DNA of 64,000 bases from NCBI GenBank assembly GCA_965240325.2, contig OZ251222.1, positions 2,976,001-3,040,000 of the forward strand. The letters run 5' to 3'. The stretch is from Rebecca billardiae RCC1528. Its lineage: Eukaryota; Protista; Haptophyta. The notes below the pieces were generated by a model, which searched no databases, was not told the origin of the DNA, and saw only the letters and a program-made list of their open reading frames with translations. This document shows positions 9,463 to 54,415 of the stretch, in pieces; within the stretch, counting starts at the first letter, position 1; each line of letters starts with the position of its first letter. Made by a program: the position numbers and the translations under genes.

Positions 9463-9511
<49 letters not shown>

Positions 9512-9519
9512 GTGTGTGT

Positions 9520-9563
<44 letters not shown>
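9463..9563. repeat. (CA)n / TA / (TG)n fold-back microsatellite
   Basis: A (CA)n tract is followed by a short TA spacer and then a (TG)n tract. Confidence 0.9.
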
Positions 9564-9566
<3 letters not shown>

Positions 9567-9576
9567 CATACATATA

Positions 9577-10423
<847 letters not shown>

Positions 10424-10521: not shown

Positions 10522-12750
10522 CTACGCTCGCCCACCGGCCAGATCCTCGATGACGGCAAGAGCGTCATCGAGGCTCGCGATCTGGTTTGTGCGCGCCTCG
10601 CGGAGACGCGCGTGCTCTCCATCCTCCTCGAGGACCACATCGCCGCCGTCTCCCGTCACCGTGGCGGTCTCGAAAAGCTCGCCACGATCATCCTGGAGCA
10701 CGGGTAGCAGGCAGTGCTGCATAGCCATGCGCCTGATGAGGCTCAGAATGCGGCCCTTCTGCCCCCCCCTCGACTCCAGGCTCGCTGCAGCCAAGTCGCT
10801 CACCATGTGGTGGGTCTCGATCAGGGAGTGCAGCCGGATGATCGAATCGGCGAGCGCCTGACTCGTCTCCACGCGCCGCATCAACGCCGCACGAAGGCGT
10901 GCAAATCGCGAGAGCTTGATGGGGAGCGCATGACGGCTCACTGCCGCCTCGCCAACGACTCGCTTGAGCGTGTCCACGATACCCGCGCGAAGATGCTCCT
11001 GCAGGAGGTTCGAGGTCGCGCGCGACAGCAGCACCACACACGCCCAGTCGTACTCGCGAGAGGACTCCGACTGCCCGAGCAGCTCGTCCATTCGCTGCGC
11101 AGCCGGTGTCGCCAGGGCCATGCACGCGTCGAGCTGCCGCGGCAGCCATTCAAAGCAGCCGTCCCATCGGATGTACGAGACGCCCTTGCCGCGGTCCCGA
11201 CGGTCACTCGCCATGAGATGCGACACCGACGCCGATTGCGCCTCGCGCAGCACAGCTCGCAGCTGCAGCCGACCGGGTGCTTCGCCAAGAGTGTGCCTCT
11301 CGCGTAGCTCCTTCTCGCGCATGCCTTGCAAGCGCTGCCGGTTAGCAGGCACCCAGCTCGTCTGGATGTGGAGGTTCGCGAGGTGAGAGAGGTGCTGCAG
11401 AAGGCCGTCGATGCCCATGTCATCCGCACGGAAGCCGAGAGTCGGATGCCCCGCGCACCACTGCCGCATCCACGCCCTCTCGGTGTCGAGCGCGGCCAGG
11501 AGATTCGGAGGCGCAGCGCCTGCGCCCGTGTCGCGATTCACCAACGGCACGATCCGGCGCACCGGGATGTCCTCGAGCTCATCCGCACCCGGCGTCAGAC
11601 GACCGCCGAGTCTGGCTCGCCAGTGCGCGGTGGCTCCGGAGCCGTGCTGCCCGTCCACCTTAGTCAGCACCAGAATCGTGCGCTCCCACAGGCGATTCTG
11701 CGGCGAGGCCTCCTCCTCCAGGATGCGCAGCATGCCGTTCCCGCGCAGCGTGTCCGGCCCCGCCGAGAGCACGCACAGGACGAGGCAGCTCGGGTCACGC
11801 AAATATCGGCGCGTGCACTCGAGCGACTCGCGGCGCGTCTGCTGCGGCACCTCGACGATGCCGGGCAAGTCGACAAGCTCCAGCTCGGGCACATTCGGAG
11901 CGCGGATCTCGATCTCGATCACCTCGTCGGTGATGATGTTGCGCCCCGTGTCGTTGGGGTGCTGGAGGAGCACGAACTCCTGAATCGCCCTGGCGATCAA
12001 GCCCGCATCCACGATATCCTGCGCCGCAGCCTGCTCGTTGAACTCAGGCGGCTGCATCTCCCGCTCCTGCAAGATCACGCGCGGAGTGCCGTCCTCGGCC
12101 ACCCGGACGTGCCGGAGGATGACGACGTTCTCGTGCGTGCGGTGGCGCAGCTTCATGCAAATGGGCATGCGCGTGGTGAACTGCTCGCCGCGCGGGAACG
12201 CCGACCGCATCGCCAATCGCTCGAGTGTGGAGCTCTTGCCCGAGGACTCCAGCCCGACGACGACAATCTTGGGCAGCTCGAGCTCAAGGTTGGCGCTCAC
12301 GCGGTCCAGTGCTCGGCGCACTCTGCCGTAGGCACCTTCCAGAAGCGCGTGGTTGATCCCGCCGTGCGCGCCATTTGAGGCGTCCCCGCCGAGACTCTGC
12401 GTGTCCAACCCGGCCGCGGCGTTGTATGTTTGCCGGCTTGCTGGCGTGGCGAGAGTTCGCCGCGCCTCGTTGACCAGGCTCGTGATCTGGTTGCACTTCT
12501 CGAGCAGATCGGCTCCGGCCTGGTTGTGCCGGTCAGGGTGGAAGCTAAGCCGCAGATTGTGGACTTGCTGCCGCACAAACACCTCCACGGTCTCGTGGAA
12601 CACCGTCACGCGGTCTTTGCGCAGGTTGAGGATCTCGTAAGCGGTGAGGCCGCCGCCGTCGTGAACGCCGTGGAGCCAGCCATGCCACTCATTGATCTCG
12701 TCGTGGGTGGCCGGCGACGCAGGGTTTGGAAAGCGTAGGTGCTCGTTCAT
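10522..12750 (-). CDS. J-domain (DnaJ) / Mx-like dynamin-family GTPase fusion, intronless, 742 aa
   Basis: J domain '[36 protein letters not shown]'. Dynamin G1 '[16 protein letters not shown]', G2 'TTRMP', G3 'LVDLPG', G4 'LTKVD'. GED-like C-terminus '[26 protein letters not shown]'. Confidence 0.88.
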
Positions 12751-12887
12751 CGCTCTTGAGACCTCGCGGCTTGGCGCTGCTGGTGGCCGTCGGAGGGACG
12801 CGGAGGTGACGACCGAGACTGGCGCTGCTCGTCGCCGATGGATGGCGGATTCCCCTTGATGATTTCTTTGGATGGACAGGACAAATT

Positions 12888-15800
12888 GGCAGGCCCCTTA
12901 TAACGGGGGTGGACTCCATTTTTAACTTTGCGACGGCGCGAAAAGGGAAAGAGAGAGGGAGGAAGAGGGAGGAAGAAGGGGGAGAAGAGGGAGGGAAAAA
13001 GAGGGAGAAAGGAAAGAGAGGGAGGAATCGGAGGATGTGAATATGCGGTTATCACTCTCACGCGGGCCGCACCGGCGGTCGGCGGAGGTGTCACTCACCG
13101 TCAGCCCACGCCACAACGGTGCTTACCGCGCGCCTCACCGCAGTCACCGCTGCTTACCGGTACCACTGCTACGCCAGCACAGTCCCTGCGGCCTGCCTGA
13201 TTGCGCGCGCGCCCACGCCCACGCGGCACACGGCCACGCACCCGGCCACACCTGCCACACGCACTGTCAGCAGTGGGGCGGTGCGCGCGGCCAGGCACAC
13301 GCGCCGGCCACGGCCGCAACCTCGCGCTACGGCCACTGCTGTGGCGCCACTGCTGCGGCGCCGCACGCGGGTGCTGCTCCGCGCGCGCGGCTCTCTCCTC
13401 CTCCGCCGCGATGATACACACCGCGCGCAGCACGCGTCGCTGCGCCCGTGCGCCGTGGGCACACATAATCCAGGTTGAGCGTCGCCGAGGTGTTGGCGAG
13501 GAGCGCCGCCGCCAGCGCAGTCATCGGCTGTAACACTCGACCCACCGCCACCAGCCGCATCGCTTGGACTGGCACCGTCATGGCGACAGACGGCGTGAGG
13601 GGGCGATGCAGGCGGGTTGCTGTAAGCGACAGCGTCCCGGCCGCGCTCCGCTCACGCAGTGCCATCCGCTGCGCCATTAGCACAGCGACTCACGCCGCAC
13701 TGCCAGCATGCACTGCCCTGTCCTGAGACTTAGAACTTGCATTGGCTGCTGTCATCGGCAGTGCCATCACTGTCACTGCCAAACTGTCGAGAGGTGCACA
13801 TGAATAAGCAGCGGCTCCGGCCGTGACGCGCGGCCCTCGATCTAATCTCTATCCGTACAGTTTCTGATGAGTAAATTTGACTGAATTGACTGAGTATGAT
13901 TCTGCTATCAGTGAGTCTGGAGCGTGCTCACTCGAGTCTCGATGCTGCCGGCGCTGCGGCGCAGTCGCCAGTCGGCGCCGTGCCATGTGGCACATGATGC
14001 CGATCAGCCGATCAGAAGCTGAAGCGTGATGACGACGATAACACGGCGCCGGCAAAGCAGGACTTGAGAGCACTGCAGCACTCTGCACTGCTACGTCGCG
14101 ACGACAATGAGATGGAGAACAACTACGCAGGTGAGCGCCAAATGGCAGCAGCAGCTGACGGTGCGCAGCAGCCGATTGCGTTTCGCCGTTATGCCCAGGC
14201 AGCATATCCCGGCGGGGCGTTGTGATGTTGAGATGATTGACCTCGTTGAAGCGCGCTCGGCCGCACCTCGACCACCGCACAACGATGCAGATTGGCGGCG
14301 TGAGCGTAGCAGTGGCCACAAGATCGCTCGCAGCTTCAGGCGACCCACACACGGCGAGCTCGATGCAAGACGTGAAATGTATGCGAGAGTGGCGAGCGCT
14401 CGCCTGACTCGCGAAGACGCCAGACGATGGGGGTGTCGGAACACCCGAATCATCGTCACCCGCCCGTGCGAGAGCGCGCGCTGCGACCCGGCCGCGTGGC
14501 CACTGCGAGGAGCGGATGGAGGAGACGATCCTGCCATCGGAAAGGGTTGAGCAGAGCTCCCTGCTCACGATGCATCGCATCGCATCGGGATGTCAAGCCG
14601 CTGGAACGCCCGCAGGCCGCGGAACCCGCACGAGCGTGGCTGACGAAAGACATGATGCGTTGACGCGTCGTGCCAAACCGGGCCGCGAGGGCCGGTGCGC
14701 TTCGCGAACCGTCGCAACTTTCGTCCATATCTGGAGACTGGTGTTTGGTATGAGCGAGCGGCTTCTCTATTGAACCCAGTGCCACCTCTATTCGAACCCA
14801 GTGCCACCTCTAAGTGACCCAGTGCCACCCTTCTATGAACCCAGTGCCACTTCTTCTATGATGACATATGGGGACCCAGTGCCACTGCTACCCGCCTGGC
14901 ACTGGGTTTGCTATTGATTTTCATATTGGTAACCCAGTGCCACCCACCCCCGGCACAGAAGGCCTGCCGACAAAGGCAGGCCCCTTATAACGGGGGTGGA
15001 CTCCATTTTTAACTTTGCGACGGCGCGAAAAGGGAAAGAGAGAGGGAGGAAGAGGGAGGAAGAAGGGGGAGAAGAGGGAGGGAAAAAGAGGGAGAAAGGA
15101 AAGAGAGGGAGGAATCGGAGGATGTGAATATGCGGTTATCACTCTCACGCGGGCCGCACCGGCGGTCGGCGGAGGTGTCACTCACCGTCAGCCCACGCCA
15201 CAACGGTGCTTACCGCGCGCCTCACCGCAGTCACCGCTGCTTACCGGTACCACTGCTACGCCAGCACAGTCCCTGCGGCCTGCCTGATTGCGCGCGCGCC
15301 CACGCCCACGCGGCACACGGCCACGCACCCGGCCACACCTGCCACACGCACTGTCAGCAGTGGGGCGGTGCGCGCGGCCAGGCACACGCGCCGGCCACGG
15401 CCGCAACCTCGCGCTACGGCCACTGCTGTGGCGCCACTGCTGCGGCGCCGCACGCGGGTGCTGCTCCGCGCGCGCGGCTCTCTCCTCCTCCGCCGCGATG
15501 ATACACACCGCGCGCAGCACGCGTCGCTGCGCCCGTGCGCCGTGGGCACACATAATCCAGGTTGAGCGTCGCCGAGGTGTTGGCGAGGAGCGCCGCCGCC
15601 AGCGCAGTCATCGGCTGTAACACTCGACCCACCGCCACCAGCCGCATCGCTTGGACTGGCACCGTCATGGCGACAGACGGCGTGAGGGGGCGATGCAGGC
15701 GGGTTGCTGTAAGCGACAGCGTCCCGGCCGCGCTCCGCTCACGCAGTGCCATCCGCTGCGCCATTAGCACAGCGACTCACGCCGCACTGCCAGCATGCAC

Positions 15801-17064
15801 TGCCCTGTCCTGAGACTTAGAACTTGCATTGGCTGCTGTCATCGGCAGTGCCATCACTGTCACTGCCAAACTGTCGAGAGGTGCACATGAATAAGCAGCG
15901 GCTCCGGCCGTGACGCGCGGCCCTCGATCTAATCTCTATCCGTACAGTTTCTGATGAGTAAATTTGACTGAATTGACTGAGTATGATTCTGCTATCAGTG
16001 AGTCTGGAGCGTGCTCACTCGAGTCTCGATGCTGCCGGCGCTGCGGCGCAGTCGCCAGTCGGCGCCGTGCCATGTGGCACATGATGCCGATCAGCCGATC
16101 AGAAGCTGAAGCGTGATGACGACGATAACACGGCGCCGGCAAAGCAGGACTTGAGAGCACTGCAGCACTCTGCACTGCTACGTCGCGACGACAATGAGAT
16201 GGAGAACAACTACGCAGGTGAGCGCCAAATGGCAGCAGCAGCTGACGGTGCGCAGCAGCCGATTGCGTTTCGCCGTTATGCCCAGGCAGCATATCCCGGC
16301 GGGGCGTTGTGATGTTGAGATGATTGACCTCGTTGAAGCGCGCTCGGCCGCACCTCGACCACCGCACAACGATGCAGATTGGCGGCGTGAGCGTAGCAGT
16401 GGCCACAAGATCGCTCGCAGCTTCAGGCGACCCACACACGGCGAGCTCGATGCAAGACGTGAAATGTATGCGAGAGTGGCGAGCGCTCGCCTGACTCGCG
16501 AAGACGCCAGACGATGGGGGTGTCGGAACACCCGAATCATCGTCACCCGCCCGTGCGAGAGCGCGCGCTGCGACCCGGCCGCGTGGCCACTGCGAGGAGC
16601 GGATGGAGGAGACGATCCTGCCATCGGAAAGGGTTGAGCAGAGCTCCCTGCTCACGATGCATCGCATCGCATCGGGATGTCAAGCCGCTGGAACGCCCGC
16701 AGGCCGCGGAACCCGCACGAGCGTGGCTGACGAAAGACATGATGCGTTGACGCGTCGTGCCAAACCGGGCCGCGAGGGCCGGTGCGCTTCGCGAACCGTC
16801 GCAACTTTCGTCCATATCTGGAGACGGGTGTTTGGTATGAGCGAGCGGCTTCTCTATTGAACCCAGTGCCACCTCTATTCGAACCCAGTGCCACCTCTAA
16901 GTGACCCAGTGCCACCCTTCTATGAACCCAGTGCCACTTCTTCTATGATGACATATGGGGACCCAGTGCCACTGCTACCCGCCTGGCACTGGGTTTGCTA
17001 TTGATTTTCATATTGGTAACCCAGTGCCACCCACCCCCGGCACAGAAGGCCTGCCGACAAAGGC
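12888..17064. repeat. 2087-bp head-to-tail tandem duplication (12888-14974 / 14975-17064)
   Basis: Identical ORF sets are offset by exactly 2087. One substitution was noticed (GAGACTGGT vs GAGACGGGT). GGC microhomology at the junction. Confidence 0.95.
14772..14943 (+). repeat. Array of the ACCCAGTGCCAC motif (6 direct + 1 inverted); duplicated at 16859-17030
   Basis: The first four copies are spaced 21-22 bp apart; an inverted GGCACTGGGTT lies at ~14898. Confidence 0.9.
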
Positions 17065-17379
17065 GGGGGACGACTAGGCTGTTCTGCCCCGCTCGTCCCG
17101 GGCGGGCGCGGCCGGCCCATCGGGCAAGGACCATGCGGGCGTCACCACCGCACTGACAAGGACACCTCGGAGCCCCGCTCGCCTGGCGGCAGTCGACGTC
17201 GTGCCGGGCTGCGCCGGCTGCGTTGACCGGCTGTGAGGCGGCTTGGAAGAGTGCTGCAAAGTGTTGTTCGGCCCCGCGCGACCGTGCGCTCGAGGTCGGC
17301 GCGTTGTCGTCATAGATAATGCAGCTGGCAAGGCCAACGCCGGTCATAGCACGCGGTTGGCAAGCCACCCGCGCGCCCT

Positions 17380-24368: not shown

Positions 24369-24605
24369 CCCGCCCGATCCCGCGCCAGGGCTCGTGCCCG
24401 ACGAATGCGGCGCTCTTGAACTTCCGCCGTCTCTGCGCGGGACCCAGTCCGGTTTCGAGCAGAGCTTCCGGACGCCCACACAGATCGGCAGGATGGCGGC
24501 GGCGGCGCCCGCCGCCCGGGGACCAAGGCCAAAAGTTGGCCAAGACTCTTGGCCAACGGACTCGCTCGTGCTGCACTGCGGGTGGGTGCGCGGCGTGGGT
24601 GCGCG

Positions 24606-27600
24606 ATGAAGCGCCCGCGCACGGACGCCGCCGACGCGGCGTCTGACTCGTCTGACTGGGCGGAGGGGGAGCGCGTGGATCTGGTCCTCCTCCAGGAGCT
24701 CGCCGCGCCAGTCGAGGAGGGCGGATGCGCCTGGCAGCCTGCGGCGGAGGCGTTGCGCGTGGCCGAGCACACAGCTGCAGCTCTCGCCGAGGGCTCGTCG
24801 CCGAGCGACGGCGAGCGCGCGCGCAAACGCGGGCGCGCGCCCGCCGTGGTGGCGAGCGAGAGCATCGACGGTTCCGTCTCGACCGGCGAGCCCACGCCGC
24901 TCGCGCTCCGGGCGGATGGCTCGGCGCGCAAACTCTCAGAGCGCATGCGAGCAGACACCACGCCCGAGGCTCGAGATCTGCCGCCAGCCGGCGCAGAGGC
25001 GAGGCTTGCGCGCGGCAGGCGCGATCCGGCGTCCCGCGTGCTGGGTGCAGACGGCAGCGACTCGTCTTCCGACGAGCACGCCCCGCCGCGGCCCCATCCC
25101 GCCCCGGGCAAGCGGCGCATCCTCTCGCTGGGCAGCGGCAGCCGCAGCGGCAGCGACGCGGATGAGCCGGCCGCCAACCGGGGCGAGCCGCCCCCGGACT
25201 CGGAGTCCGAGTCCGAGTCCGAGGTTGCGGGCGGTGGTCAGCGCGGGCTATCGCAAGAGGAGGACGACGAGGACGAGGAGGAGGACGACGAGGAGGACGA
25301 GACGGACGAGCAGCCGCACGGGAAGCGCAGGGCGGTGATCCGCGACTCGAGCGACGACTCGGACGGCGGCTCGAGCGAATTCGACGCGCGCGCCGCGCCA
25401 CGGCGGCACAAGCCGCCCGCCCCGGCCGCGGCGCGGCCGCCCGCGCCGCGGCGGGTGCGCGAGGTGGGCGTGCGCGAGCGCGCGCCGCAGCCGCGCGAGC
25501 CGCTCGCCACGTCGCGCGCGGCGGCGCCCTGGCGCGGGCGCGCGGCGGGCGAGGCCGCGGTGATGGCGGTGGAGCTGGGGCGCGGCCAGTACTCGATCGG
25601 GCACATCGCGCACATCCAGCCGGGCGCGGTGTTCCCCGACCGGCGGCAGCTGCACGACGCGGGTGTGCACCGCGGGCTGGTGCAGGGCATCTCGGGCAAC
25701 GAGGCGGAGGGCGCGCGCTCCATCGTCATCTCGGGCGGGTACGACATCGCGGACGAGGGCGACCGCTTCGAGTACACGGGCGCGGGCGGGCGCGACCTTT
25801 CCGGGAACAAGCGCACCAACTCGGTGCAGGCGTTCGACCAGAAGCTGGAGCGCGGGAACTACTGGCTCGCGGTGTCGCACGAGCAGCGCCGCCCGGTCCG
25901 CGTCGTGCGCGGCTTCCGCCTCGCGCGCGTCTCCCGCTTCGCGCCGCAGTCGGGGTACCGGTACGATGGCGTGTACTATGTGTCACGCTACTGGCGCGAG
26001 CGGGACGGCTCGGGCAACGCCATCTACAAGTTCGAGTTCGTGCGGGACACGCTGCTGTCGGACACGTGGCGCCCGCCGTGGGAGACGGCGCACGAGGTGC
26101 GCGTGCGGGACTCGCACGCGCAGACCAACTGGGGCGCGCGTGCGCGCGGCGGCGCGGCGCGCGGCGCGCGCGGCGCGGCGCGCGCCGACCAGCCTGCCGA
26201 GGGCCGAGCTCGGCGCACGCCGCCACCGCCCAGGCCGCCGCTGCCTGGCACCGCGGCCGAGCGAGCGCGATGGCCGCGCTTCATGCGGCGCGCGCTCGCG
26301 CGGCTCCGTGTGGGCGCGCCGCGCTCCGCCGGCCGCCCGTACCGCGCCTTCTTCTTCTTCGACCGCTGGTCGGAGCTGCACAGCGGGGCGGCGGCGCGCG
26401 CGCGCTCGGCGGCGGGGCGCGCGCGCTCGGCGTGGCGGCACGCGGAGGAGGACGGCAGCAGTCAGCCCGGCTCGGACGCCGACACCGCCGCCGAGTCTGA
26501 GGGGGAGGGCGGCGTGGGGAGCGGCGGCGCGCGGCGCCGCGCCGCCGGTGCTGCTCCCGCGGCTGCGCGCGCACGGCACCGCGCGCGGCTCGGCTGCACA
26601 GACTCTTCCGACTCCGCCGGCGAGGACGACGACGACGGCGACGACGGCGGCCGCGGCGACGACGGCGCGGCCGCGCGCGGCGCGTGCGCGGCCCGCGGTG
26701 GCGCGCGGAGGGGCGCGGAGGAGGAGGAGGCGCAGCTCGACGTCGTGGCGCGCGGGCTGGACGAGGACGACTCTGGCGACGACGCGTGCGCGGCGCGGGC
26801 GCGCGCGACCGCCGACGCGCGCCCGCCCCGAGCGGGGTGCGACGGCAAGGAGAACAATGCGCGGGCCAACAGCCAGGGCCGCTCCGTGCCGGCCGGCGCC
26901 GCCGCGGCAGAGCGCGCTCTGCCGGCGGAGGCGGAGGACCTCGCAGCGTCCCCGCCGGGCTCGCCCGCGCTCACGGCCGAGCGGGTTGTCGCGCGCGTCT
27001 GTGCCGAGAGCCCGCGCCGACCGACCACGACGCCGACGGCGCCATGCTCGCCGCCAGCGACGCCGCCGGCAGCGCTGGGCGCGGACGGGCCCCCGCTCGC
27101 GCGCGCGGCCGCGTCGGCGCCTCGGCCTGAGACGAGGGGCGCGCTGGAGACGAGGGGCGCGCTGGAGGCCGCGCCGCCGCCGCCGCTGCCGCGCCTGCGG
27201 CTCTCGCTCGACGCGGCCCTGGCGACGCTCGAGCGCGCGCGCTCGGAGGGCGGCGCGCGCGCCCCGCCACCGCCTCGGCACAACCTCCTCTGCCACGTCT
27301 GCGAGGACGATGCAGACGACGACGACGACGATGGTGGCGGTGGCGGTGGCGATGGCGGTGGCGATGGCGGTGGCGATGGCGGTGGCGATGGCGGTGGCGA
27401 TGGCGACAACGGCAGAGGGGGCGGCTGTGTGGAGGCGGAGGCGGCGGGCGGCGGTGGCGGCGGGCGCGGCGGCGCGCTGCCCGGCGCGTGCGGCGGCGGC
27501 GAGTGCACCACCGTGCGCACGCTGCGGTGCGCCTTCTGCCCGCGCGTCTTCCACGCGCGCTGCCTCGCCGCAGCGTACGCGGAGGAGCGCCCGGCGCGCG

Positions 27601-30600
27601 TGCAGCGGCTGTGCGCCGCGGCTGCCGCGTGCGGCGGCTGGCGCTGCCTCGTGTGCGCGGCCGAGTGCGCGTGCAGGCAGCCGCCGTGGGGCGTGGCGGA
27701 CGCGCCCGCCGCGGCGGGGGGCGCGGGCGGCGGCGCACAGGCCGTGGCGGCCGACCTTCTCCTGGCGCACGAGCGCGCAGGCTGGCTGCGCCGCGCGGCC
27801 GCTGGAGGGGCGCGCGCCCGGGCGGACGGCAGCGCTGCGGCGCGCACGGCCGCGCACGGCTCACCGCGCGCGCGCTCGCTGCGCACGCCCGAAAGCGCGC
27901 CGGGCGCGGGCGCTGGGCAGCCGCGGGGCCGGCCAGCTGGCACGCGCGCGGGCGCGGGTGCCACCGACCCAGGCCTCGCGTCTGCCACGCCGCCGCCGCA
28001 CGCCGCCGCCGAGGACGCGCGAGCGCTCGCGCGCCGCGCGCGTGCGCGGCACGACACTCAGTTTGGGCTGAGGGGCGTGCGCTGGCCTCGGCCGCCGGGC
28101 GGAGGCGGCGCGGCGCACGCGGTGGCGGGGCGCAGACGGGCGCGCGCGGCGGCGCATCCTCGGCGGGGCATCGAGGCGAGCGTGGCCGCGCTCGCCGCGC
28201 GCGCGGGCGCGGCGCGCGGCGCGGGCGGCGCGAGCGGCGCAAGACGCGGCACCGATGAGAGCGCCGCGCGCGCGCTCGCTCACGGCGACGAGGACAGCGA
28301 CGACGACGACTTCGTGCGAGCGCGCCCTGGCGGCGCTGGGCGCGCGGGCGCAGGCGGCGGCGGCGGCGAAGGTGCACAGCTCGGCGCTGTCGACTCGCCG
28401 CTCGCCAGCCCGGCGGCCGAGAGGCACGCCGCGCACGGCGGCGGCGGCGGCTGTGGCGGCGGCGCGCACGGCGCGCACGCACACAGCCCAAGCGTCGGCA
28501 GCGGGGCGGATAGTCCGCGCGCGCGCGCTGCCGCTGCCATTGGCTCGCGCCGTGCGCGCAGCAAGGCGCTGAGCGCGCCGCGCTGCGCGCCCGGCGCCGC
28601 GCGCGGCGCAGCGTCGCGCGCGCTCGACGCGCCACTCGGCGCTGCGGACGAGTCCGAGCCGGAGGCTGGCAAAGAGATCGGCGCCGCCGGCGTCGGCTCG
28701 GCCGCGTGTGCCGCCGAGGGCGACGGCGGCGCGGCCGGGCCGGAGCCGCCGCCCTCGCTGCCTCGCCGCCCGTTCCCGCGGCTGCTGCCGCCGCCGCCGC
28801 GGCTGCCGCTGCCGCCCGGGCTCCGGCTGCTCAGCCTGGGCAGCGCGTGCGCGCTCGTGCCCCCGAGCGTCGGCGGCGAGCCCCTTGTGCGCGCGCTGGG
28901 CGTGCCGGTGCGCGCCTCGGTCGAAGGGCTGACGGCCGCACTGCCGGCGCTGTTTGGGCGCGTGTGCGCGCGGCTGCAGTGGGCGCGGCAGTGGAGCGCG
29001 ATGGCTGCGGAGGCGGACGCGGGCGGGTGGGCGCGGGCGGCCGCGCCGCCGCCCTCGCCGCGTCACGCCGCCCCCGCGCACGCCGCCGCGGCGGACGACG
29101 AGCCGGAAGTGCCGCGCGCGCCGAGCGCGCGCGCGTGCGCCGAGCGCGCGCGCGAGCTCGAGCGGCAGTGCAGGCTGGCTTGGTCGGTCGTCTCGCACGT
29201 GCTGGAGCGGCGGCTGCCGCACGCGCGCGCGGAGCAGGGCGCCGCGCTCGTGGCCGCGCTGCGCGCGCAGCTGAGCGCCACCCTCGACGAGCAGCCGCCG
29301 CTTGCAGACGTAGCGCGCGCCGAGATGCAGCGTGCGCGCGGCGCGGCGCACGCGCGGCACGCGCGCGCCGGCGCGCGGCCGGCGGGCGGCGGTGGCGCGG
29401 AGGAGGGCGGCGCAGGGCCGTGGGAAGCGCAGCGGGGCGGCGCGGCGCAGCACGGCGGTGCCGCCGGCGCGTCGGCGTGCGGGCTCGAGGTGCCCGCCCT
29501 TGCGCGCAGCGCGGGCGCGCGGCTGCAGTTTGCCCTGCGCTGGCAGTGCGCGCGCTGGGTGGCGGCCATGGATGCGCACGCCGCCGCCGCCGGGCATGGG
29601 GCGCGGCCGGAGCCGAGCGCGGCGCCGCGCGCCGACGAGGGCGGCGGCGGCGGCGAGGCGGCGGCGGCGGCGGGCAGCTGCGGCGCGCTGCTCACGCCGC
29701 TCGTCGGCGCGCCGCCGTGCGACGCGCGCGCCCTCGGCGCGCGGCTGATCGCCGAGCTGCTCAGCGTGCACGCGCTCTGCCCGGGCTGGTGCGCGCCGCT
29801 GCCCGACACAACAGGCGGCGGCCGAGGCGGCGCGGGCGCGCGGCCGGCTGGGTCGGCGCCGCTGCACGAGTCCCCGACGCTCTCGGTGTGGCACGCGGCG
29901 ATGGGGCTGCTGGAGGGCAGCGCGGAGGGCGGCGGTGGCGGGGCGGATGGCGGCGCCGCCGCCGACTCGGTCGAGGGCCCCTTCTGGCGCGCGTTCGCAA
30001 AGGGCGCCGCTGCGGACGCAGACGCGTTCCGGCTGCTGCTGCGGCGGTGCGGCGGTGCGGCCGAGCGCGCGCGCGCGCCCGAGGACATGGCGGAGGCGGT
30101 GTGGGAGGCGGTGCTGTGCGTGGCGCCGCTCGGCGCGCTCGACGCGAGCGCGCGCGCGCACGCGCGCGCGTGCACGGCGCGCTCACACTGGGCGCTCGTG
30201 CGCTCGCTGCTCGAGGCCTCGCCGCTGGGCGGCTCCGCGCCCGGGCCGCGCGCGCGGGCGCTGCCTCTCACGCTGTGCGGCCGCGCGCTCGCCGCCGCGG
30301 ACGGGGAGCTGCAGGGCGCGCGCGCGCGCGCGTACACCGCGCTGCTGTGCGCGCGGTGCGAGCAGCTAGGCACCGTGTGGCCGCCATCGCTCGAGGTCGC
30401 CCTCGTCCTCTGGCGCGGCGCGCAGCGCCAGCCGCCGCCGCGTGCGGGCTCCGGCCGGCCGTGCGCGCCGTTTGCGAGCGCGCTCGGTCCGCTGGTGCGC
30501 TGGGCGCTGGGCGAGGCGCGCGCGCGCGAGGCGGCCGCGGACGCCGCGGACGCGGCGGCGGCGCGCGCGGAGGGCGGCGAGGCGGGCGCGGCGCTCGGCG

Positions 30601-33600
30601 ACGGCGCGGGCGCTCTGCTGCACACCGCGCCCCCGTCCTCGCGCGCGCTCGCGCCGCCCCCCGCGGACCCCTGGCCGCCAGACGGCGGCGCCGCCCCTGA
30701 TCTGAGCGCGCTCACAATCATGCGGCTGCTCGCGTGTCAGCTGCTGGCCATGCCGGCGCGCGCGCGGCCCCGCGCCTTCTCCGCCGTGCTGGCGACGGTG
30801 GGGCGGCCCGCGGCGGTGGTCGACTGCGCGCGCACGCACGCGCGCTCGGCGGGCTGTCTCGGCGCGCACGGCCGGCAGCTCGGCTGCGTGGCTGAGCTCT
30901 GGCTGAGCGCGGGCGCGCTCGCGCTGCTGGGAGCAGCCTGGCCCGCGCAGGCGCGCGCGGGCGCGCGCCAGCTCGCGCGCGTGTGCGCCTCGCTGCTCGA
31001 GCCCGCGGCGTCGAGCGCCGCGGCGGTGCGCGCGGTGATGGACGGTCTGCTGTGGCTTGCTGGCAGCGCGCGCGCGCACGGCGCCGACCTCGGCCCCGCC
31101 CTCGCGCGCACGCACGACCTCCTCGGCGCGGCCCTCGACGCGCACGGCGCCGCGCGCGCGCACACGGTCACCGCCGCGCTCGGCGTGCCCGGCGAGCGCT
31201 CGCGCGCGCTCGCGCTGGAGTGGGCGGAGCTGTGCGCGCACGCGCTGGGCGGGCTGCGCGAGCTCGTCGCCTCGCCGCCGCCCGCGCCGCGCGCGCGCCA
31301 GCCCGCCGAGGCCGACGTGCTCAGCGGCGCGCTCGGCCGCATCGTGTGCGCGTGCGCCGCGGCCGGCAGCGGGACAGCCGCGCTGCTGCCGCTGGCGCAC
31401 GCCGCGCTCGGGCTGATCGAGGCGGCGGTGGGCGCGGCGGCGCGGCGGCCTGCGGACGGCGCGTGCGCGCGCGCGAGCGCAGAGGACGCGGAGGCCGAGC
31501 TCGACCGGCTGATCGAGGCGCTCGACCCGGCGGTACTCGCGGACGACTCGGTCGAGGCCGCGCCGCCGCCGCCGCCGCCGCAGCCGCAGCAGCAGTCCGG
31601 CGCGCGCGCGCCCGCGTGGACCGCGGGCGAAGGCGAGCCACCGCCCGCGCAGCACGCGCGTGCGGGCGCGGCCGAGTGCGCGTACACGCAGCGGCTGCTC
31701 GTGCTGCTCGCCGAGCTCGACGCGCAGGACGCGCCCGGCCGCCCCACGCTGCGCCGCGCGCTCATGGCCCGCTGGAGCGCCACAGCCGCCGCGGCCGCGT
31801 CCGCCGCCGCGGCCAATGTCGGCGCGGCCGGCACCGCCTCGGCCGCCGCCGCCGCGTCCGACCGCCCGGCGGATGAGCTCACGTTCGCTATCGTGCGGTG
31901 CTGGGCGCGCGTCGCGGCGCTGCTCGTCGAGCACGGCGCCCGGCCGTGGGACGCGTACACCCGCTTCCTCCTCGAGCAGTCCCTCTTCGACGTGGGCGTG
32001 GGCGCGGGCTACGGAGCGGCGGGCGCGCACCCGCAGCAGCAGCACGCGGCGGGCGGCGGCGGTTGCGGCGCCGCCGGCGTCGGCGGCGCGCGCGGAGCGG
32101 GCGCGGCCGTGCCCGCGGGGTCTCGGCTGAACGCCGCGCTGCGCGCGCGGCGAGCGGTGCCCTGCGCCTTCTTCGCCGAGGCCCTCGCCTTCTCCCCGCG
32201 CGCCGCGTCGCTGCTCCTCGCGCACCCCAGCTCCCGGCCGCACGCGGTGAGTGTGTGCCTGGCGGCGCTGTGCGCGCAGCCGCCCGCGCGGGGCGCGTGC
32301 AGCCTGCTCGGCACGCTGCGGCGCGCGCCGCCGACGCGCGCCGTCTTCGGCGCGGCGGTGGGCGAGGAGGTGGAGCGCGCGGGCGACGACGGCCTCGCGC
32401 CGCGCCGCGCGAGCGTGCTGTGCGCGGTGCTCTGCCAAATGCGCAGCGAGTGGGAGGCGGCGGCCAGCGGCGCGCGCGCCCCTGCGGCGGCGGGCAGCGG
32501 CGGCGCGGGGCCGCGCGCCGCGGCCGCACCCTCCGCCAGTGCGCTCGAGGCGGAGCACGCGCGGTGGCTGCAGCGCATGCCGGCGGCGCTGATCCACGGC
32601 GTGGCCGAGGCGGACGCGCGCGCCGCCCACGGCGGCGCACCCGAGCACAGCGCCTACGTCGGCCAGTGCTTCCAGGTACGCGCACAGCACAGCGCGCGCA
32701 CAGCGCTCGCCCGCGCGCGCGGCCCGCGTGTGTGGCCGCGCCGGGCCCGCGGCGCGTGCGAGCCGTGAGCGGCCGCGAGGGTGCCCGTCGTGGCAGCAGC
32801 GCGGAGCCAGGCCGCCGCGCGAGCCCGGGCGCATCGCGCACGCCAGCCCGGCGCGCGTGGTACCCGGCTGCACGGCAGCGCAGGGGGGCCGCCAGGCGCG
32901 TCCGCTCGCGCCTCCACGCGTGTGGCTGGCTGCGGCCGCGTGACAGCTTGCCGCGTGCGCGCGCGCGCCGCCCCTTGCCGCGCGCGCGCGCGCCGCGCAG
33001 GTTGCGGCGCACACGCTGCTCGTCCTGCCGCACGCCGCGAGGGAGCACGCCCTCGAGCGGCTGCTCGGCCGCTTCTTCTCGCACGGTGAGCTGAGCTGAG
33101 CGCGCGCGGCCGACACAACGCGCCGCGCACGCGCCGCCCGCGCCGTGTGCACCCGCCAGCCTCCTCGCATGCCCCGGGGACAGCCGCCCGCCCGCCCGCC
33201 GCGACGCGCTGACCGCCCCCCGCGCGCGTGCGCCGGCGCCGCCGCCCTCGCCGCCCCCCTCGCCGCCGCCCCGCCCTGCGCGCGCGCCCTCCGCACAGCC
33301 GCGTTCGCAGGCGCGCACCAGCGCCACGCGCGCGCGCACGTCGGCAGCGCGCTCGCCGGCCTTGCCCAGCTCAGCTTCGACTCCGACCGCTACCTGGCGC
33401 GGCAGCTGGGGCAGCTGCTCGAGCTGCCGCACACGCTGGCGGCGCAGGGCGCGCACGCGGGCGCGTGCGACGCCGCCGCGCTCGACGCGCTCGTCGGCGC
33501 GCTCTGCCGCCCGGCGCCGCCGTTCGCTGCAATCGTGGGTCGGCTGCGCACCTACTGCCTGCTGGGCTCGGTCCTGCCCGCCGCTCGCGAGGCGCTGCTG

Positions 33601-35014: not shown

Positions 35015-35530
35015 TGTCAAAAGCCCAAGGCAGCCATTGGCGCCATTCCCCAGCTCGAGGTTTCAATCTCAAGGCGCTGAGCAATTCTAAGCGCCACCAT
35101 GCTGAGGCTTCATTCCAATTCAAAACCTTATCATCGACCTCAACTGTCGGTTTTATTCACGTCCAGTGCACAAATTCATTCATCATCATTCATCGTGCAT
35201 TTCATAATGGCCAACAAGCCCAACAAGCGTCGCGGAACAATCCAGGAATCAAAGCTCCTGAGATGTTCTCAAGCCTTCGCAGGGCAATGCACTATCAGAT
35301 CATTCCGAGAACGTGCCTTCGCAATCAGAAGCCGAGAAGCATCTCCAAACTTTCTAATCACGAAAGTTCTGGGATGAGTCCTTCGTGAGAACCGCCTACA
35401 AAAGTTTTTCTCAGCGATCTGGAGCTACACCAGCCACACAACAAAACCGAACTGATCAGCAAGCAGGGCCAGACCCCTGCGCCACCATCGCCAAAGAGCG
35501 AACCTCCGCCAGCGCACGAAGTGCCAATCA
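35015..35530 (+). repeat. 5' LTR
   Basis: TGTCAAAAGCC...GTGCCAATCA, repeated at 41423-41938. Confidence 0.97.
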
Positions 35531-38500
35531 TGAGCTCATGGGAGCTTCGCGGCGGACAACGTGGGAACACACCGCGCGGACGCGCGCGGTTTCACCCGAA
35601 CTCGAAGGTCGACATCCGCGAGGATTTGACCGACGACACCACCAGACCGGCGGCGCAGCAGCCAAAGCGCGCGTCACGCGACCGACCGGAACGCAACCAC
35701 TCTCGACCTTCGCAGCAGCCGCGAGGCGAGAGGACGCGTACTTCGAACGAGCAGCTGCGCTCGTTCAAGAACCTCGACTACCGCTTCGGACATCCCCCGC
35801 GGAGCGAGCAAGACCACAACCTCAGCGGCCGCGACGGCAAAGCCCAGCGACAACGCGTACTACAGGTCAAGCGCCGCAAGTGGCGCTTCAAGGTCAACAA
35901 GGACTCCAACCACGCACCCGACGACGGGGCGTGGAGAGCGGAGCGCACAGAGCCACCCAGCGCCGCGTCTGCGCTGCGGGACCCGCTCCAGCCGCGGGGT
36001 CACAACCACCAAACCTCGCAACGCGAGGCCAAACGCGGCGCGCGCACGCGCACCGCGCACGCGCAAAGTATCCCCACGCTGATTCCCAGCGCGCGTCAGA
36101 CACAGGGACGACAGTCGGCGACCGACTCGATCCCATATGTCCCCTCCTTCACGTTCCAGATTCTCCCTTCCGTCTATGCGGGCGGCTGGGACTCTACGCC
36201 CGCCTACAAGGGCGCGGCGACAACGCCTAACCAGTGGAGTGAGATTGATGACGATGATCCAGCGTCGTGCCAGCCGTGCGACAATCAGTCGTGCACATCG
36301 AGGCATTGCCTTCTTGAGTGCAACATCTGTGGGATGGGCAGAGTCTGCAGCTACCGATGCGCAGACGCCATCCAGGTTCAGCATCAGCTCGAATGTGAGC
36401 AGATCATCCAGTTTGCAGCGATGAACGATGGGATTGACATCGATGATGATGGCATTCACGTCCACCAACAGGACGGACCCGTCGCAGCGGCTGATCGCCG
36501 CAGCCTGAGCGTCGTGAATGACGCAGGCGCCAGCCTCGATGATATTTGCCCTTGGCGGCCATCTAAACGATGCACTATCTACTCGGGAGGCTTCATCGCA
36601 GCAGCCGCAGAGCGGCATCAAGGTCACAACTACACAGTTGGAGACTATGTGCGGGAAAGGGACGAGCTTCACCAAAGCAAGTTTGATCTCATGTTCCATT
36701 GTAACGACGCACTCCTACAGCCAGGTGTCGCATGCTTACTGCACGACGAGTTCTATGGGCTGACTTCTGAAGCAGGCGAGGGACACTCGCCAGCTGACGA
36801 CGGTCCACCTGGACATGGCACAAACTACCCGCCTGCCGCGACTGGCGCCGACAACAGCGCACAGCAGAGCAGCGATGGGGACGAGTCCTCTACGTCGGAC
36901 ATTGACAGCTATGCCACAGCAGAGGACCACATTGAGACAAGCTCGCCCCACGCGTCACCGCGAACGCGCAGAAATGGAAGCGAAGCTTGCACCTACTTGC
37001 CCGACGCACATGCAATGATGGCTGTGCAGACAAGCCAGCCCGGCGTCGGAAGCTACAAGCTGACGAATTTCTTCACAATCAAATCGAAAATGGCTATCCA
37101 CGGAGCGATCAAGGACGCAGTCACCGAGGTCAAGGCTTCCTACAAGGGAAGAGCGACCGACACTACGTCGTCCATGGTCACCCTCGTCGAGGCCAGGCTC
37201 TCCGGATACGCGCTGGCCGAGGCAGCCGTGTGGACAGCCGAAAATGCTATTCGGGAACCTTACGCAACCGCATTCGCAAACATGGACGCGGACACCACCA
37301 TCATGCAGATGACGATCGTCTACGAGCGATCGGTGGAAGTACTTTTCAAGCGTATCAAGGACATGATGCTGCCAAGTCTCTTTTCGTACCTCGAGTCGAA
37401 AAGGCACATCGTGAACCCGAATGAGAATTTCCTGAATTTACATACTCTGCTCGAAATCTTCGAGCACGAGCTGAACGTATCGACCATGTCGGAGCTCCGG
37501 GCTGAGTTCAAGAAGCTCTACCCGGACCGACCGACCCCGGTGAGCGGCCCTGAGATGATCAAGCAAACGGTGGAGATGGTACGCGCATCACGCTATCGAG
37601 AGCTAGACGACGCCACACTCCTCGTGTTCAAGCTGTACAATGGGATGCACGAGCACCCAGAGGTCTACTCGACCGTCATCTCTATTTACGGTTCAATGTC
37701 GCCCCAGCAATGCGTGGCGCAGACCGAACAGCTCACCGCCCAGATCGAGGACGCATACAGGCGTTGGACTCAGTCGCCCAAGGGACGACAGGCAACGCAA
37801 CGTGACCCCAAGCGGGGCGGTCCCGCGCACGCTCTCAATACTGAGGAGGCGGACCGCCGACAACCAGCAGTCACGTGCTCGCATTGCGGACTACGCAATC
37901 ACACCGCAGAACGGTGCTGGAAGCTACATCCAGACTTGCGGCCACCCAGGCCGCCCGGTGCACCAAAACAGGGCAACTTCAAGCCGCCCGCCGAGCCCGG
38001 CAGGTATGACGGCAAGTTCATCAAGGTACCTCCGCCCCCCAAGTGGGCGGGGAGGCCGCGAGCCCAGATGGTGCAAGACGAGGACATCGACCCGGAACCC
38101 GATGACGCAGATCTCGAGCCGACGCAATACGCGTATCTGGACTCGGGCGCGTCCCAATCATTTGTCGATATCAACCTCGGCCTGCTACACAATGCTCATC
38201 CGATCAGCATGTCTGTCAAGGTCGCCAAGCGCGACATTGAGCTACACGCATCCAAGGCAGGCGACATGTACGTATACTTACTCGACGCCGACTCAGACAC
38301 AACCGTGCCGGTGTGCCTGGAAAACGTCGTCGGAGTCGAAGATCTCGATACTACTCTCTTTTCAGTCAACGCGTTCGCCGCGGCCGGAATGGCTGTGGTG
38401 TTCGACGAACGACCATACATCCGCATCGGCCCCAAGAGGGTTCATTTGCGCCCCGACAACACTGTCGGATTCAAGGCAGTCGTACCCAAGGCAGAGACAG

Positions 38501-41415: not shown

Positions 41416-41422
41416 GGGGGCG

Positions 41423-41938
41423 TGTCAAAAGCCCAAGGCAGCCATTGGCGCCATTCCCCAGCTCGAGGTTTCAATCTCAAGGCGCTGAGCAATTCTAAGC
41501 GCCACCATGCTGAGGCTTCATTCCAATTCAAAACCTTATCATCGACCTCAACTGTCGGTTTTATTCACGTCCAGTGCACAAATTCATTCATCATCATTCA
41601 TCGTGCATTTCATAATGGCCAACAAGCCCAACAAGCGTCGCGGAACAATCCAGGAATCAAAGCTCCTGAGATGTTCTCAAGCCTTCGCAGGGCAATGCAC
41701 TATCAGATCATTCCGAGAACGTGCCTTCGCAATCAGAAGCCGAGAAGCATCTCCAAACTTTCTAATCACGAAAGTTCTGGGATGAGTCCTTCGTGAGAAC
41801 CGCCTACAAAAGTTTTTCTCAGCGATCTGGAGCTACACCAGCCACACAACAAAACCGAACTGATCAGCAAGCAGGGCCAGACCCCTGCGCCACCATCGCC
41901 AAAGAGCGAACCTCCGCCAGCGCACGAAGTGCCAATCA
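41423..41938 (+). repeat. 3' LTR
   Basis: Copy of 35015-35530. Confidence 0.97.
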
Positions 41939-41947
41939 ATATATATA

Positions 41948-50911: not shown

Positions 50912-51091
50912 GTCGAGGACTGGTTCCGGTACTTGTGGGGGATGGTCGTGTCTCTGCTGGGCCTGGTGGTTCTGGTTGAGCTCGTCCTCCTCCTCCCCCC
51001 CCCCCCCCCCCCCCCGGCGCTTGGGCAGTTCCCCCACCCTCCCCAGCAGGGGCCTCTGGCCAGCCTGAGTTCTGCCTGCGGGCCCGTGGCC

Positions 51092-54009: not shown

Positions 54010-54415
<406 letters not shown>

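Follow-up and report, generated by a model that had tools for sequence, protein, structure and literature searches.

A native haptophyte gene for a dynamin-superfamily protein with an N-terminal J domain, a candidate for Hsp70 recruitment in cis

From the nuclear genome of a haptophyte alga, probably a relative of Pavlovales, we describe a native and intact gene with a single exon. It encodes a dynamin-superfamily protein (DSP) that carries a J domain at its N-terminus. The gene was found in a 64-kb stretch of DNA, referred to below as the window, and its product (the window protein) belongs to a small, fast-diverging and distinct clade of marine protist proteins, the J-DSPs. Taken as a whole, our proposal is that this native gene encodes a cytosolic, self-assembling dynamin which recruits Hsp70 in cis; we give it somewhat better than even odds, with a probability of about 0.55.

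Results

The complete coding sequence of the fusion extends over positions 10522..12750 of the minus strand. It is a single uninterrupted, ATG-initiated reading frame of 742 aa plus the stop codon, with no intron, as established from the ORF list and colinear alignment. Four relatives (P0001-P0004, 681-715 aa) align colinearly with the window protein from end to end, with identities of 37-43% and E values from 1e-117 to 1e-125; because of this alignment, a chance reading frame in GC-rich DNA is excluded, and the gene is real and intronless, as the original prediction had it. The fusion of a J domain to a dynamin GTPase, which was its central claim, also proved to be a true in-frame fusion, contained in one ORF and including a complete GTPase. 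The GC3 of the gene is 0.83, against 0.74-0.90 in neighbouring host genes, and the best named match of a transporter gene nearby is in Pavlovales sp. CCMP2436 (68% identity), with Isochrysis, Emiliania and Prymnesium next. A thraustochytrid host, suggested at first by the intron-poor, GC-rich DNA and by the match to Hondaea, was rejected because this transporter is most similar to haptophyte sequences. By the Kyte-Doolittle 19-residue mean (maximum 1.02), the window protein contains neither a hydrophobic N-terminal segment nor a transmembrane helix, which suggests that it is soluble and located in the cytosol. No poly-A tails, sought as evidence of single transcripts, were found on the contigs of the relatives. 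Scanning the window for Rfam families and tRNAs returned nothing, and the only PADLOC result was a negligible match to the P-loop of LeoA.

The layout of the protein is J domain, Gly-rich linker, BSE1, G domain, BSE2, four-helix stalk and BSE3; the coordinates of these parts, given below in brackets, are all on the minus strand. The AF2 model used in their description was built on a 60-sequence alignment and has a pLDDT of 86.7. An N-terminal extension (aa 1-34; 12649..12750), defined by the alignment and AF2, bears a conserved NPxSPAS..EI..W motif and a helix at residues 16-27 modelled with high pLDDT; its P10 and W22 are shared by all five members of the subfamily to which the window protein belongs. 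The J domain follows (aa 35-113; 12412..12648), as indicated by a sub-threshold Pfam DnaJ match, the family profile and AF2. The model displays the canonical J topology, with helix I (37-40), long helix II (52-70), the HPD loop, long helix III (80-99) and helix IV (103-113), and the block-mean pLDDT is about 86-97 over aa 11-110. Residues 41-51 form a subfamily-specific insert of 9-11 residues between helices I and II, and helix II of this subfamily has few basic residues. The HPD tripeptide, the Hsp70-ATPase-stimulating motif of J domains, was located by motif scan at aa 71-73 (12532..12540), and H71 and P72 do not vary within the subfamily.

The identity of this domain does not depend on the window protein alone, which reaches only 18.6 bits with the Pfam DnaJ model against a cut-off of 27.8 (E 0.002, aa 37-110). 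All five subfamily members match DnaJ (best 6.3e-09), and the cut-off is exceeded in more distant members of the clade: P0012 (56.2 bits), P0016 (53.2), P0010 (48.1), P0014 (35.7) and P0009 (28.0), in each of which Dynamin_N is above its cut-off as well. When the PDB was searched with a profile of aa 1-125, all 28 matches were J-domain proteins, the best being HscB (4it5, 1.1e-06); the NCBIfam HscB model also matches the window protein weakly. Thus, the J domain of the window protein, although itself divergent as judged from its sequence, is confirmed at the family level, by the PDB profile search and by the confident AF2 model. The predicted presence of an intact, HPD-containing J domain therefore stands, the tripeptide being in place and the fold being supported by family profiles and AF2. 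A Gly/Asp-rich linker (aa 114-131; 12358..12411), delimited by conservation, connects the J domain to BSE helix 1, and its residues G114, D116, G122, D123, G127 and G130 are the same in all subfamily members.

The BSE helix alpha-1 (aa 132-149; 12304..12357) was assigned from conservation, the Vps1 alignment and AF2, which models helices at 132-137 and 140-149; the region aligns to the N-terminal BSE of the Vps1 GTPase-BSE construct, and Y141 is invariant throughout the clade, with I132 and G142 nearly so. The dynamin-type G domain (aa 157-416; 11503..12282) rests on Pfam, PDB matches and a motif scan. It reaches 79.9 bits with Dynamin_N, for which the cut-off is 27 (E 2.9e-22, aa 162-365), and its matches in the PDB are Vps1, dynamin and Drp1. 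The motifs G1 (GLESSGKS, 166-173), G2 (T193), G3 (DLPG, 294-297) and G4 (TKVD, 363-366) are intact, and a G5-like NR is present at 405-406, where both residues are subfamily-invariant and R406 is also invariant in the whole clade. With this score and five G motifs, the dynamin G domain that had been predicted was recovered. It is followed by BSE helix alpha-2 (aa 417-433; 11452..11502), an AF2 helix aligned to GTPase-BSE constructs.

A helical region of stalk length had been predicted downstream of the G domain, and a helical stalk was indeed found there (aa 446-686; 10693..11415) with AF2, alignment to the Drp1 profile and fold matches. Its long helices in the AF2 model span 446-486, 497-522, 530-558, 562-603 and 617-686; a segment of about aa 521-580, modelled with lower confidence as loop or helix, is probably the stalk-tip loop, at the place of the dynamin PH, the Drp1 B-insert and Mx L4. 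The family profile spans full-length Drp1 (4bej) across positions 144-678, three of the five subfamily members match Pfam Dynamin_M, and the AF2 model aligns over about 640-770 columns with the folds of full-length dynamin-1, dynamin-3, Drp1, MxB and MxA. The suggestion of a GED-like tail held in part. A C-terminal helix (aa 711-738; 10537..10620), recognised by AF2 and fold matches as a structural equivalent of GED / BSE alpha-3, is modelled with a pLDDT of about 93-95 and resembles GTPase-GED/BSE fusions, and a GED-like helix is to this extent supported by the model, but Pfam GED (PF02212) gave no match either in the window protein (E<=1) or in the five subfamily members (E<=0.1). Pfam detected no PH domain or PRD in the window protein.

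The description of the GTPase as Mx-like turned out to be true only generically. With the family profile, PDB scores were 100 bits for Vps1 and 86 for Drp1, above 82 for Mx1, followed by dynamin (76) and OPA1 (about 60); in the fold search, dynamin and Drp1 ranked above MxB and MxA, both of which were significant. The lack of PH and PRD is common to Drp1 and Vps1 as much as to Mx. Mx-like DSP lineages have been reported in stramenopiles and haptophytes (PMC11326297). In the readable part of the alignment files published with the Mx survey, signature peptides of our clade are absent, and the Hondaea entry seen in its supplements is a different paralogue from the J-DSP member, so far as these files could be read; from these parts, the J-DSP clade appears to be unsampled in the published Mx phylogeny.

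The flanks of the gene are repetitive, as had been noted originally. Some 100 bp past the stop codon lies an (AT)59 microsatellite (10303..10420; TRF, repeat finder), followed by a 589-bp dispersed repeat (9568..10156; self-BLAST, junction sequences) and by back-to-back (AC)n and (GT)n microsatellites (9463..9563; TRF, sequence). The second copy of the 589-bp repeat, at 41939-42527, is 99% identical and is placed directly after the 3' LTR of a copia element, before an (AT)n tract. Upstream, an offset-identity scan and self-BLAST revealed a 2,087-bp unit present twice, head-to-tail (12880..17067, 99.8% identical), which begins 130 bp before the start codon and leaves the CDS outside; it is either a recent duplication or an assembly artefact. 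These repeats are real, yet they are not of transposon-end character. The copia element (35015-41938) is young, with LTRs that are 100% identical and with ATATA as its target-site duplication; it is the transposon nearest to the fusion gene, which is outside it, its start being 22 kb away. No LTR, TIR or TSD enclosing the gene was found in the window, and self-BLAST detected one copy of the gene in these 64 kb. The notion of a mobile island was not upheld by this check of copy number and transposon association, by the host-like GC3 or by the age of the fusion, discussed below.

An exhaustive profile search gave 4,742 matches with E<=1e-3, of which 95 had E<=1e-30, and those ranked highest reach into the J region. 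Together with the trees, it defines a J-DSP clade with no fewer than 17 cluster representatives, derived from marine protists: the haptophyte of the window, the thraustochytrid Hondaea, and MMETSP, TARA and JGI samples. At least six metagenome loci encode the fusion in a single ORF, and both HPD and P-loop are present in the marine L015, L016, L017, L020, L022 and L029. A metagenome scan with subfamily-specific patterns returned nothing, and one with clade-wide patterns returned 227 relatives. In the tree, 13 J-bearing proteins form one clade with a support of 92; when the J columns were left out, all 17 proteins with a J domain or its remnant still formed one clade (94/87), in which the window protein and P0001-P0004 grouped together (100/100). 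P0005, the sole classical dynamin included, was the outgroup, and the J-DSP clade is separate from it; neighbouring clades include Phytophthora and Tetraselmis proteins. The fusion is therefore old, common to at least haptophytes and stramenopiles, and a single ancestral event would fit the clade. No synteny with the window was detected at the Hondaea locus or on the relatives' contigs L001 and L003. The remark that the fusion was not known as a characterised family agrees with the literature searched, in which we found no account of it; the surveys of the dynamin superfamily (PMC10280142, PMC11326297) contain no mention of a J domain.

The HPD motif is unstable within the clade. In a census of 22 N-termini it was substituted in six and deleted in four, the Hondaea ortholog being among those altered, and the window protein and 11 other representatives spread over the clade retain it unchanged. 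The surrounding helices are kept in the altered relatives, and HPD status differs even between close sisters (P0002/P0004, P0012/P0015 and P0010/P0009). This frequency of loss (10/22) implies that many lineages can do without activation of Hsp70, and the J fold could have a different role. C-terminal additions also vary among members, with a WD40 propeller detected by Pfam in P0016.

Discussion

A dynamin polymer equipped with its own Hsp70 recruitment is the most economical reading of the window protein, in which the catalytic signatures, the HPD as well as all G motifs, are intact. The G domain, BSE and stalk would provide for a GTP-driven, self-assembling polymer, as in Drp1, Vps1 or Mx. 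Since the J domain is attached to BSE helix 1, it would lie on the G-domain/BSE face of this polymer, at a distance from the stalk tip that contacts the target. J domains stimulate Hsp70 via HPD, and the HPD loop could here dock Hsp70-ATP and trigger ATP hydrolysis. Clathrin is uncoated by auxilin or GAK with Hsc70; by the same logic, but in cis, Hsp70 loaded onto the polymer could drive its disassembly and recycling, or alternatively the chaperone might be loaded onto the structure that the polymer encloses. Oligomerisation and membrane binding of the window protein, like its location, are predicted features. Auxilin binds dynamin. J proteins and Hsc70 are known to be functionally linked to dynamin-dependent endocytosis (PMC2172058, PMC2173062), and the J protein Rme-8 is reported to have been identified via a genetic interaction with dynamin (PMC2172058).

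One could also imagine an Mx-type antiviral effector, a DSP polymer assembled on viral capsids or factories, such as those of giant viruses infecting haptophytes, with the J domain bringing Hsp70 to dismantle these structures or to recycle the effector. Turnover of the HPD between sisters and variable C-terminal additions are typical of immunity genes, and divergence seems to be fast, the window protein and P0002 sharing 39% identity where the neighbouring transporter and its counterpart from SRR24908212, the sample of P0002, share 69%, although this comparison presupposes orthology and one source organism for SRR24908212. A G domain, BSE and stalk without PH/PRD fit Mx, with MxB and MxA among the significant fold matches, the Hondaea family member is auto-annotated as 'Mx1', and both host groups have Mx-like DSPs in the survey cited above. 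On the other hand, a specific affinity to Mx is missing, since Vps1 and Drp1 equal or exceed Mx1 by profile, and dynamin and Drp1 exceed Mx by fold; the signature peptides are absent from the readable Mx-survey alignments, and the window holds one gene copy only. We regard the antiviral role as unlikely, and consider equally speculative its extension to the entire family, in which J-DSPs would be an unrecognised DSP class with its own Hsp70 recruiter, acting in marine algae and heterotrophic protists as fast-evolving, Mx-like immune effectors against giant viruses, and the HPD-less proteins would be decoy or regulatory paralogues. That the gene is carried by a mobile element, or was recently acquired from a foreign (viral) source, is very improbable and largely refuted. 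The repeat-rich surroundings, including a repeat whose other copy abuts the young copia, might have pointed to it, as might the good fold matches to giant-virus DSPs (e.g. Hokovirus, E 5e-19); against it are the lack of enclosing terminal repeats or TSD, the single copy in the window, the host-like GC3, the distance to copia, and the sharing of the fusion by haptophyte and stramenopile lineages. Viral origin as such was rejected: only one relative came from IMG/VR, with 23% identity and on a 1.15-Mb contig, and BFVD fold matches have at most 17% identity.

A separate problem is whether the J domain serves an organelle or Hsp70 at all. A DSP of organelle dynamics, engaged in mitochondrial or plastid division or fusion and coupled by its J domain to Hsp70 in the organelle or on its surface, would have a precedent in plastid division, where J-like ARC6 is paired with the dynamin DRP5B in trans. 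Besides HscB, with its weak NCBIfam match, the closest solved J domains include a mitoribosomal DnaJ-like protein (7am2), and the Hondaea ortholog adjoins an HscB-like gene and an Hsp70 gene. Yet this adjacency looks coincidental, because the family J profile gives only 12.4 bits on the HscB neighbour; for the same reason, and in view of the missing synteny to the window, derivation of the J domain from that gene was rejected. The similarity to HscB is modest and comes mainly from the long spacing of helices II-III, neither a hydrophobic segment at the N-terminus nor a transmembrane helix was detected in the window protein, and a patchy distribution with HPD decay is unlike a housekeeping division gene, so that an organellar role seems quite unlikely to us. 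Alternatively, the J domain could have lost the ability to activate Hsp70 and persist as a J-like module with a structural or regulatory task, such as capping the BSE for autoinhibition or dimerisation; the protein would then be no more than a divergent DRP. HPD-less J-like domains exist, ARC6 and Tim16/Pam16 being examples, and the decay of the motif within retained helices in 10 of the 22 relatives, the sub-threshold DnaJ score of the window protein and the scarcity of basic residues in helix II would all agree with such a module. The intact HPD of the window protein and 11 representatives across the clade, the invariance of H71 and P72 in its subfamily, and the canonical DnaJ scores of several members (48-56 bits) argue against it, and we find it improbable for the window protein.

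Both the polymers of the dynamin family and the Hsp70/J-protein system have been well studied as remodelling machines. To our knowledge, they have so far been known to cooperate only in trans, as auxilin, GAK and Rme-8 do with Hsc70 around endocytosis that depends on dynamin, or ARC6 with DRP5B. A natural covalent fusion, conserved over a protist clade, points to direct coupling of GTP-dependent assembly to an ATP-dependent chaperone. J-DSPs could therefore serve as a compact test system for distinguishing whether Hsp70 acts to disassemble a dynamin-type polymer or acts on the polymer's target, and the repeated loss of HPD constitutes a natural mutagenesis series. They also extend the known diversity of the dynamin superfamily in under-sampled marine eukaryotes by a new domain architecture, and their assignment corrects the database labels 'EngB' and 'Mx1' on family members.

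Among known systems, Drp1/Dnm1/Vps1 are closest in sequence (100 bits for the Vps1 GTPase-BSE and 86 for Drp1) and are top fold matches over the G domain, BSE and stalk; they have the same G motifs and likewise no PH or PRD, but they carry no J domain, their identity to the window protein is about 19-26%, and the Pfam GED model fails on the latter. The Mx proteins MxA and MxB and the protist Mx-like DSPs resemble it in having a G domain, BSE and stalk without PH/PRD, and in significant sequence (82 bits) and fold matches, but they are no closer than Drp1 or Vps1, and we know of no Mx protein described with a J domain. The MADS, PADS, MidX and giant-virus DSPs are short proteins of haptophytes, oomycetes, green algae and Nucleocytoviricota (PMC10280142, PMC11326297). 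Viral DSPs match the fold, and Phytophthora and Tetraselmis proteins neighbour J-DSPs in the tree, but identity is at most 17%, and a J domain is mentioned in neither of the two surveys. With HscB/Jac1-type proteins of class C (type III), of which HscB (4it5) is the closest solved J domain, the window protein shares a long helix II-III hairpin and a J domain that lacks the zinc finger and the Gly/Phe region seen in classes A and B; it has no HSCB_C, and its J domain is joined to a GTPase where theirs is joined to an Fe-S-scaffold-binding domain. The likeness to auxilin/GAK-Hsc70 and Rme-8 is one of mechanism only, homology being limited to the J fold. There, clathrin is the substrate and the J domain sits on a different polypeptide from the GTPase, whereas in the window protein J domain and GTPase are covalently fused; the proposed logic, by analogy, would be the same, a J domain placed on a scaffold and recruiting Hsp70 for its remodelling or disassembly.

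Gene and domain organization

The stretch at 10522-12750 (-) is a real gene without introns, since its single ATG-initiated ORF of 742 amino acids can be aligned end to end with four proteins of 681-715 amino acids (37-43% identity, E from 1e-117 to 1e-125). In its product, Pfam Dynamin_N covers residues 162-365 (E = 2.9e-22), a motif scan found all GTPase motifs intact (G1 GLESSGKS, T193, DLPG and TKVD), and an alignment of the subfamily formed by the window protein and these four relatives (P0001-P0004) shows no variation at N405 and R406 of the dynamin-type G5. No Pfam match to GED was found in the C-terminal half of the window protein or its subfamily; Dynamin_M was matched by three of the five members, and with the family profile an alignment to full-length Drp1 spans positions 144-678. 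In a fold search, an AF2 model built from 60 sequences (mean pLDDT 86.7, pTM 0.82) gave alignments 640-770 columns long with full-length dynamin-1, dynamin-3, Drp1, MxB and MxA. The protein is thus shown, as far as sequence and model can indicate, to be an active-looking dynamin-type GTPase with a predicted bundle signalling element (BSE) and stalk.

Taken alone, the J domain of the window protein is marginal (18.6 bits versus the Pfam cut-off of 27.8), because an insert separates helices I and II in the window subfamily, whose helix II is also poor in basic residues. However, DnaJ is matched by all five subfamily members (best E = 6.3e-09), scores of 28-56 bits are reached in more distant clade members, and the 28 PDB chains retrieved by a profile of residues 1-125 are all J-domain proteins, HscB being the best match (1.1e-06). 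The AF2 model displays with high confidence a canonical helix I, a long helix II, the HPD loop, a long helix III and helix IV. These comparisons and the predicted structure confirm the J domain beyond the marginal score of the single protein. Sequence and model also place a conserved Gly-rich linker between the HPD-bearing J domain and BSE helix 1. The original prediction of an intronless gene encoding a J domain, G domain, stalk and GED-like terminal helix was therefore correct, and it is near certain that the gene is a conserved J-dynamin fusion.

A family of J-domain dynamins

A clade of dynamin-superfamily proteins (DSPs) defined by an N-terminal J domain (J-DSPs) appears to be new. The fusion is not described in two broad DSP surveys (PMC11326297, PMC10280142), and a full-text literature search found no description of it, which agrees with the earlier view that it is uncharacterised as a family. 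The J domain is mentioned neither in the Mx-origin survey (PMC11326297) nor in the MidX paper (PMC10280142), and the family signature peptides were not found in the alignment files of the former. Family members are found under the misleading automatic database names 'EngB' and 'Mx1'. As the claim of novelty depends on the absence of relatives, an exhaustive profile search was chosen; the word-based search had yielded only four relatives, and the profile gave 4,742 matches at E≤1e-3 and 95 at E≤1e-30, the top ones reaching into the J region. The family members come from marine sources (TARA, MMETSP, and JGI, ENA and Logan assemblies).

Among representatives of the wider clade, DnaJ and Dynamin_N are both above cut-off in P0009, P0010, P0012, P0014 and P0016, and a second metagenome scan detected HPD and a P-loop within one ORF at loci L015, L016, L017, L020, L022 and L029. 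One clade in a tree of 127 sequences holds 13 J-bearing proteins (support 92). With the J columns removed, IQ-TREE placed all 17 proteins with a J domain or its remnant in one clade (94/87), which also contains two long-branch J-less pairs, and united the window protein with P0001-P0004 (100/100). At least three changes of the J character are needed on this tree, which fits one gain and two losses. The apparently J-less P0017, P0007 (MMETSP) and P0018 have kept helices I, III and IV and lost the HPD loop; P0017 is Hondaea fermentalgiana GBG25638.1, automatically annotated 'Mx1', and the J region of P0016 aligns with the Hondaea N-terminus (E = 1e-18). The family occurs, at a minimum, in haptophytes and in a labyrinthulomycete stramenopile.

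The HPD motif itself is kept in 12 of 22 aligned N-termini, that of the window protein included, substituted in six (HPAD, QPD, HPN, HAD, HTD and SR-Q) and deleted in four, and its status differs within three close sister pairs (P0002/P0004, P0012/P0015 and P0010/P0009).

Some members have additional parts. A C-terminal seven-blade WD40 propeller follows the J domain, dynamin G domain and stalk in P0016 and its cluster (about 1,031 amino acids, from JGI metagenomes), suggesting an exchange of target-recognition modules at this end of the protein; P0007 (1,088 amino acids) has, towards its C-terminus, a second region resembling a GTPase. The P0002 gene shares one 2.5-kb contig (SRR24908212) with a convergent gene fragment at 2281-2571, whose GGM-rich C-terminal tail resembles chaperonin Hsp60/GroEL by eye; hence the contig probably represents genomic DNA, and there too the J-dynamin gene is likely to lack introns.

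Genomic setting

The window is eukaryotic DNA other than human. GC content varies between 52 and 83% across it in 2-kb steps, dinucleotide microsatellites are abundant and most genes are uninterrupted ORFs. The window encodes a Ty1/copia polyprotein, an MFS transporter, a Sel1-repeat protein, a ThiF-type enzyme, a PDCD2-like protein and a nucleotide-sugar transporter. For the complete transporter gene at 59872-60882 (-), the best named relative is from Pavlovales sp. CCMP2436 (68% identity), followed by Isochrysis (59%), Emiliania (58%) and Prymnesium (54%); this makes the host a haptophyte, probably with ties to Pavlovophyceae.

The repeats reported around the J-DSP gene are real. Downstream lie (AT)59, a 589-bp repeat and back-to-back (AC)n/(GT)n; upstream, a 2,087-bp unit present twice in tandem (12880-17067) starts 130 bp from the ATG. 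Its copies are 99.8% identical (about four mismatches over some 2,100 aligned bases) and may stem from recent duplication or from a fault of the assembly (collapse or expansion); each carries a 243-amino-acid ORF (13849-14580 and 15936-16667) with no Pfam match, and a 22-bp mini-repeat. The 589-bp repeat (9568-10156 and 41939-42527, 99% identical) is possibly a non-autonomous element or small segmental duplication. Each copy starts at a TA-rich tract and has an (AT)n microsatellite after it, and one of them directly adjoins the copia 3' LTR. The 'mobile island' that had been proposed did not hold, as the J-DSP gene is single-copy within the window, its GC3 of 0.83 is host-like (0.74-0.90 in host genes) and the only clear transposon, a full-length Ty1/copia element (35015-41938), starts 22 kb away. 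This element is apparently very young: its 516-bp LTRs (35015-35530 and 41423-41938; TG...CA ends) are 100% identical, it is inserted into a (TA)n tract with a 5-bp target-site duplication, ATATA, and its polyprotein is an uninterrupted 1,964-amino-acid ORF (35521-41415) with RVT_2 and a retroviral SH3-like domain.

Elsewhere, a 2,739-amino-acid ORF (24549-32768, +) in the 26-34 kb block of about 82% GC matches only the methyl-cytosine-binding SAD/SRA domain in Pfam (residues 350-500, E = 2.3e-40); it is a putative gene model, overlapped by long ORFs on both strands, as expected at such GC. A 36-bp coding-type repeat (Gly/Met/Pro-rich) has grown to about 680 bp at 42879-43563, a 25-bp tandem repeat occurs in 18 copies at 50453-50912, and a 100-N assembly gap between (AG)n and (CT)n microsatellites (54101-54200) breaks a UCH-domain ORF region.

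Possible function and relation to known dynamins

The most likely mechanism, to which as a whole we assign a probability of 0.55, is that of a self-assembling polymer recruiting Hsp70 in cis. J-DSP would assemble like Drp1, Vps1 or Mx, and its J domains, presented on the G-domain/BSE face, would recruit Hsp70-ATP and trigger hydrolysis; Hsp70 might then strip and recycle the polymer, following the auxilin/Hsc70 logic, or act on an enclosed target.

An Mx-type antiviral effector would be compatible with turnover of the HPD motif and with fast divergence (39% identity of the window protein to P0002 versus 69% for a transporter from the same sample, orthology assumed), but we consider it unlikely; equally unlikely is that the J domain serves as a non-catalytic J-like module. 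A role in organelle dynamics appears slightly less probable still. The resemblance of the J domain to HscB speaks for it, as do the neighbours of the Hondaea member, where after the J-remnant dynamin gene come an HscB-like gene (MIF, with weak matches to DnaJ and HSCB_C) and then an Hsp70 gene (BEYU01000014.1, 10001-17186). HscB and Hsp70 are, however, a functional couple in their own right, and the adjacency looks coincidental, judging from the family J profile, which scores only 12.4 bits on the HscB gene; moreover, the window protein has no hydrophobic segment, N-terminal or other. That the gene is mobile or viral cargo seems very improbable: its viral links are weak, the one relative in IMG/VR showing 23% identity and giant-virus DSPs sharing the fold at no more than 17%.

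The 'Mx-like' character originally suggested stands only generically. Family-profile scores were 100 bits for Vps1, 86 for Drp1, 82 for Mx1, 76 for dynamin-1 and about 60 for OPA1, and the fold search ranked dynamin and Drp1 first, MxB 15th and MxA 19th, so no preference for Mx is seen. Mx-like lineages of both stramenopiles and haptophytes are described in the Mx-origin survey (PMC11326297), together with the virus-associated clades MADS, PADS and MidX; its Hondaea entry is a different paralogue from the J-DSP member. In our tree the neighbouring clades include a Phytophthora 'Dynamin-A' and Tetraselmis proteins, a mix of taxa that resembles the one described for PADS.
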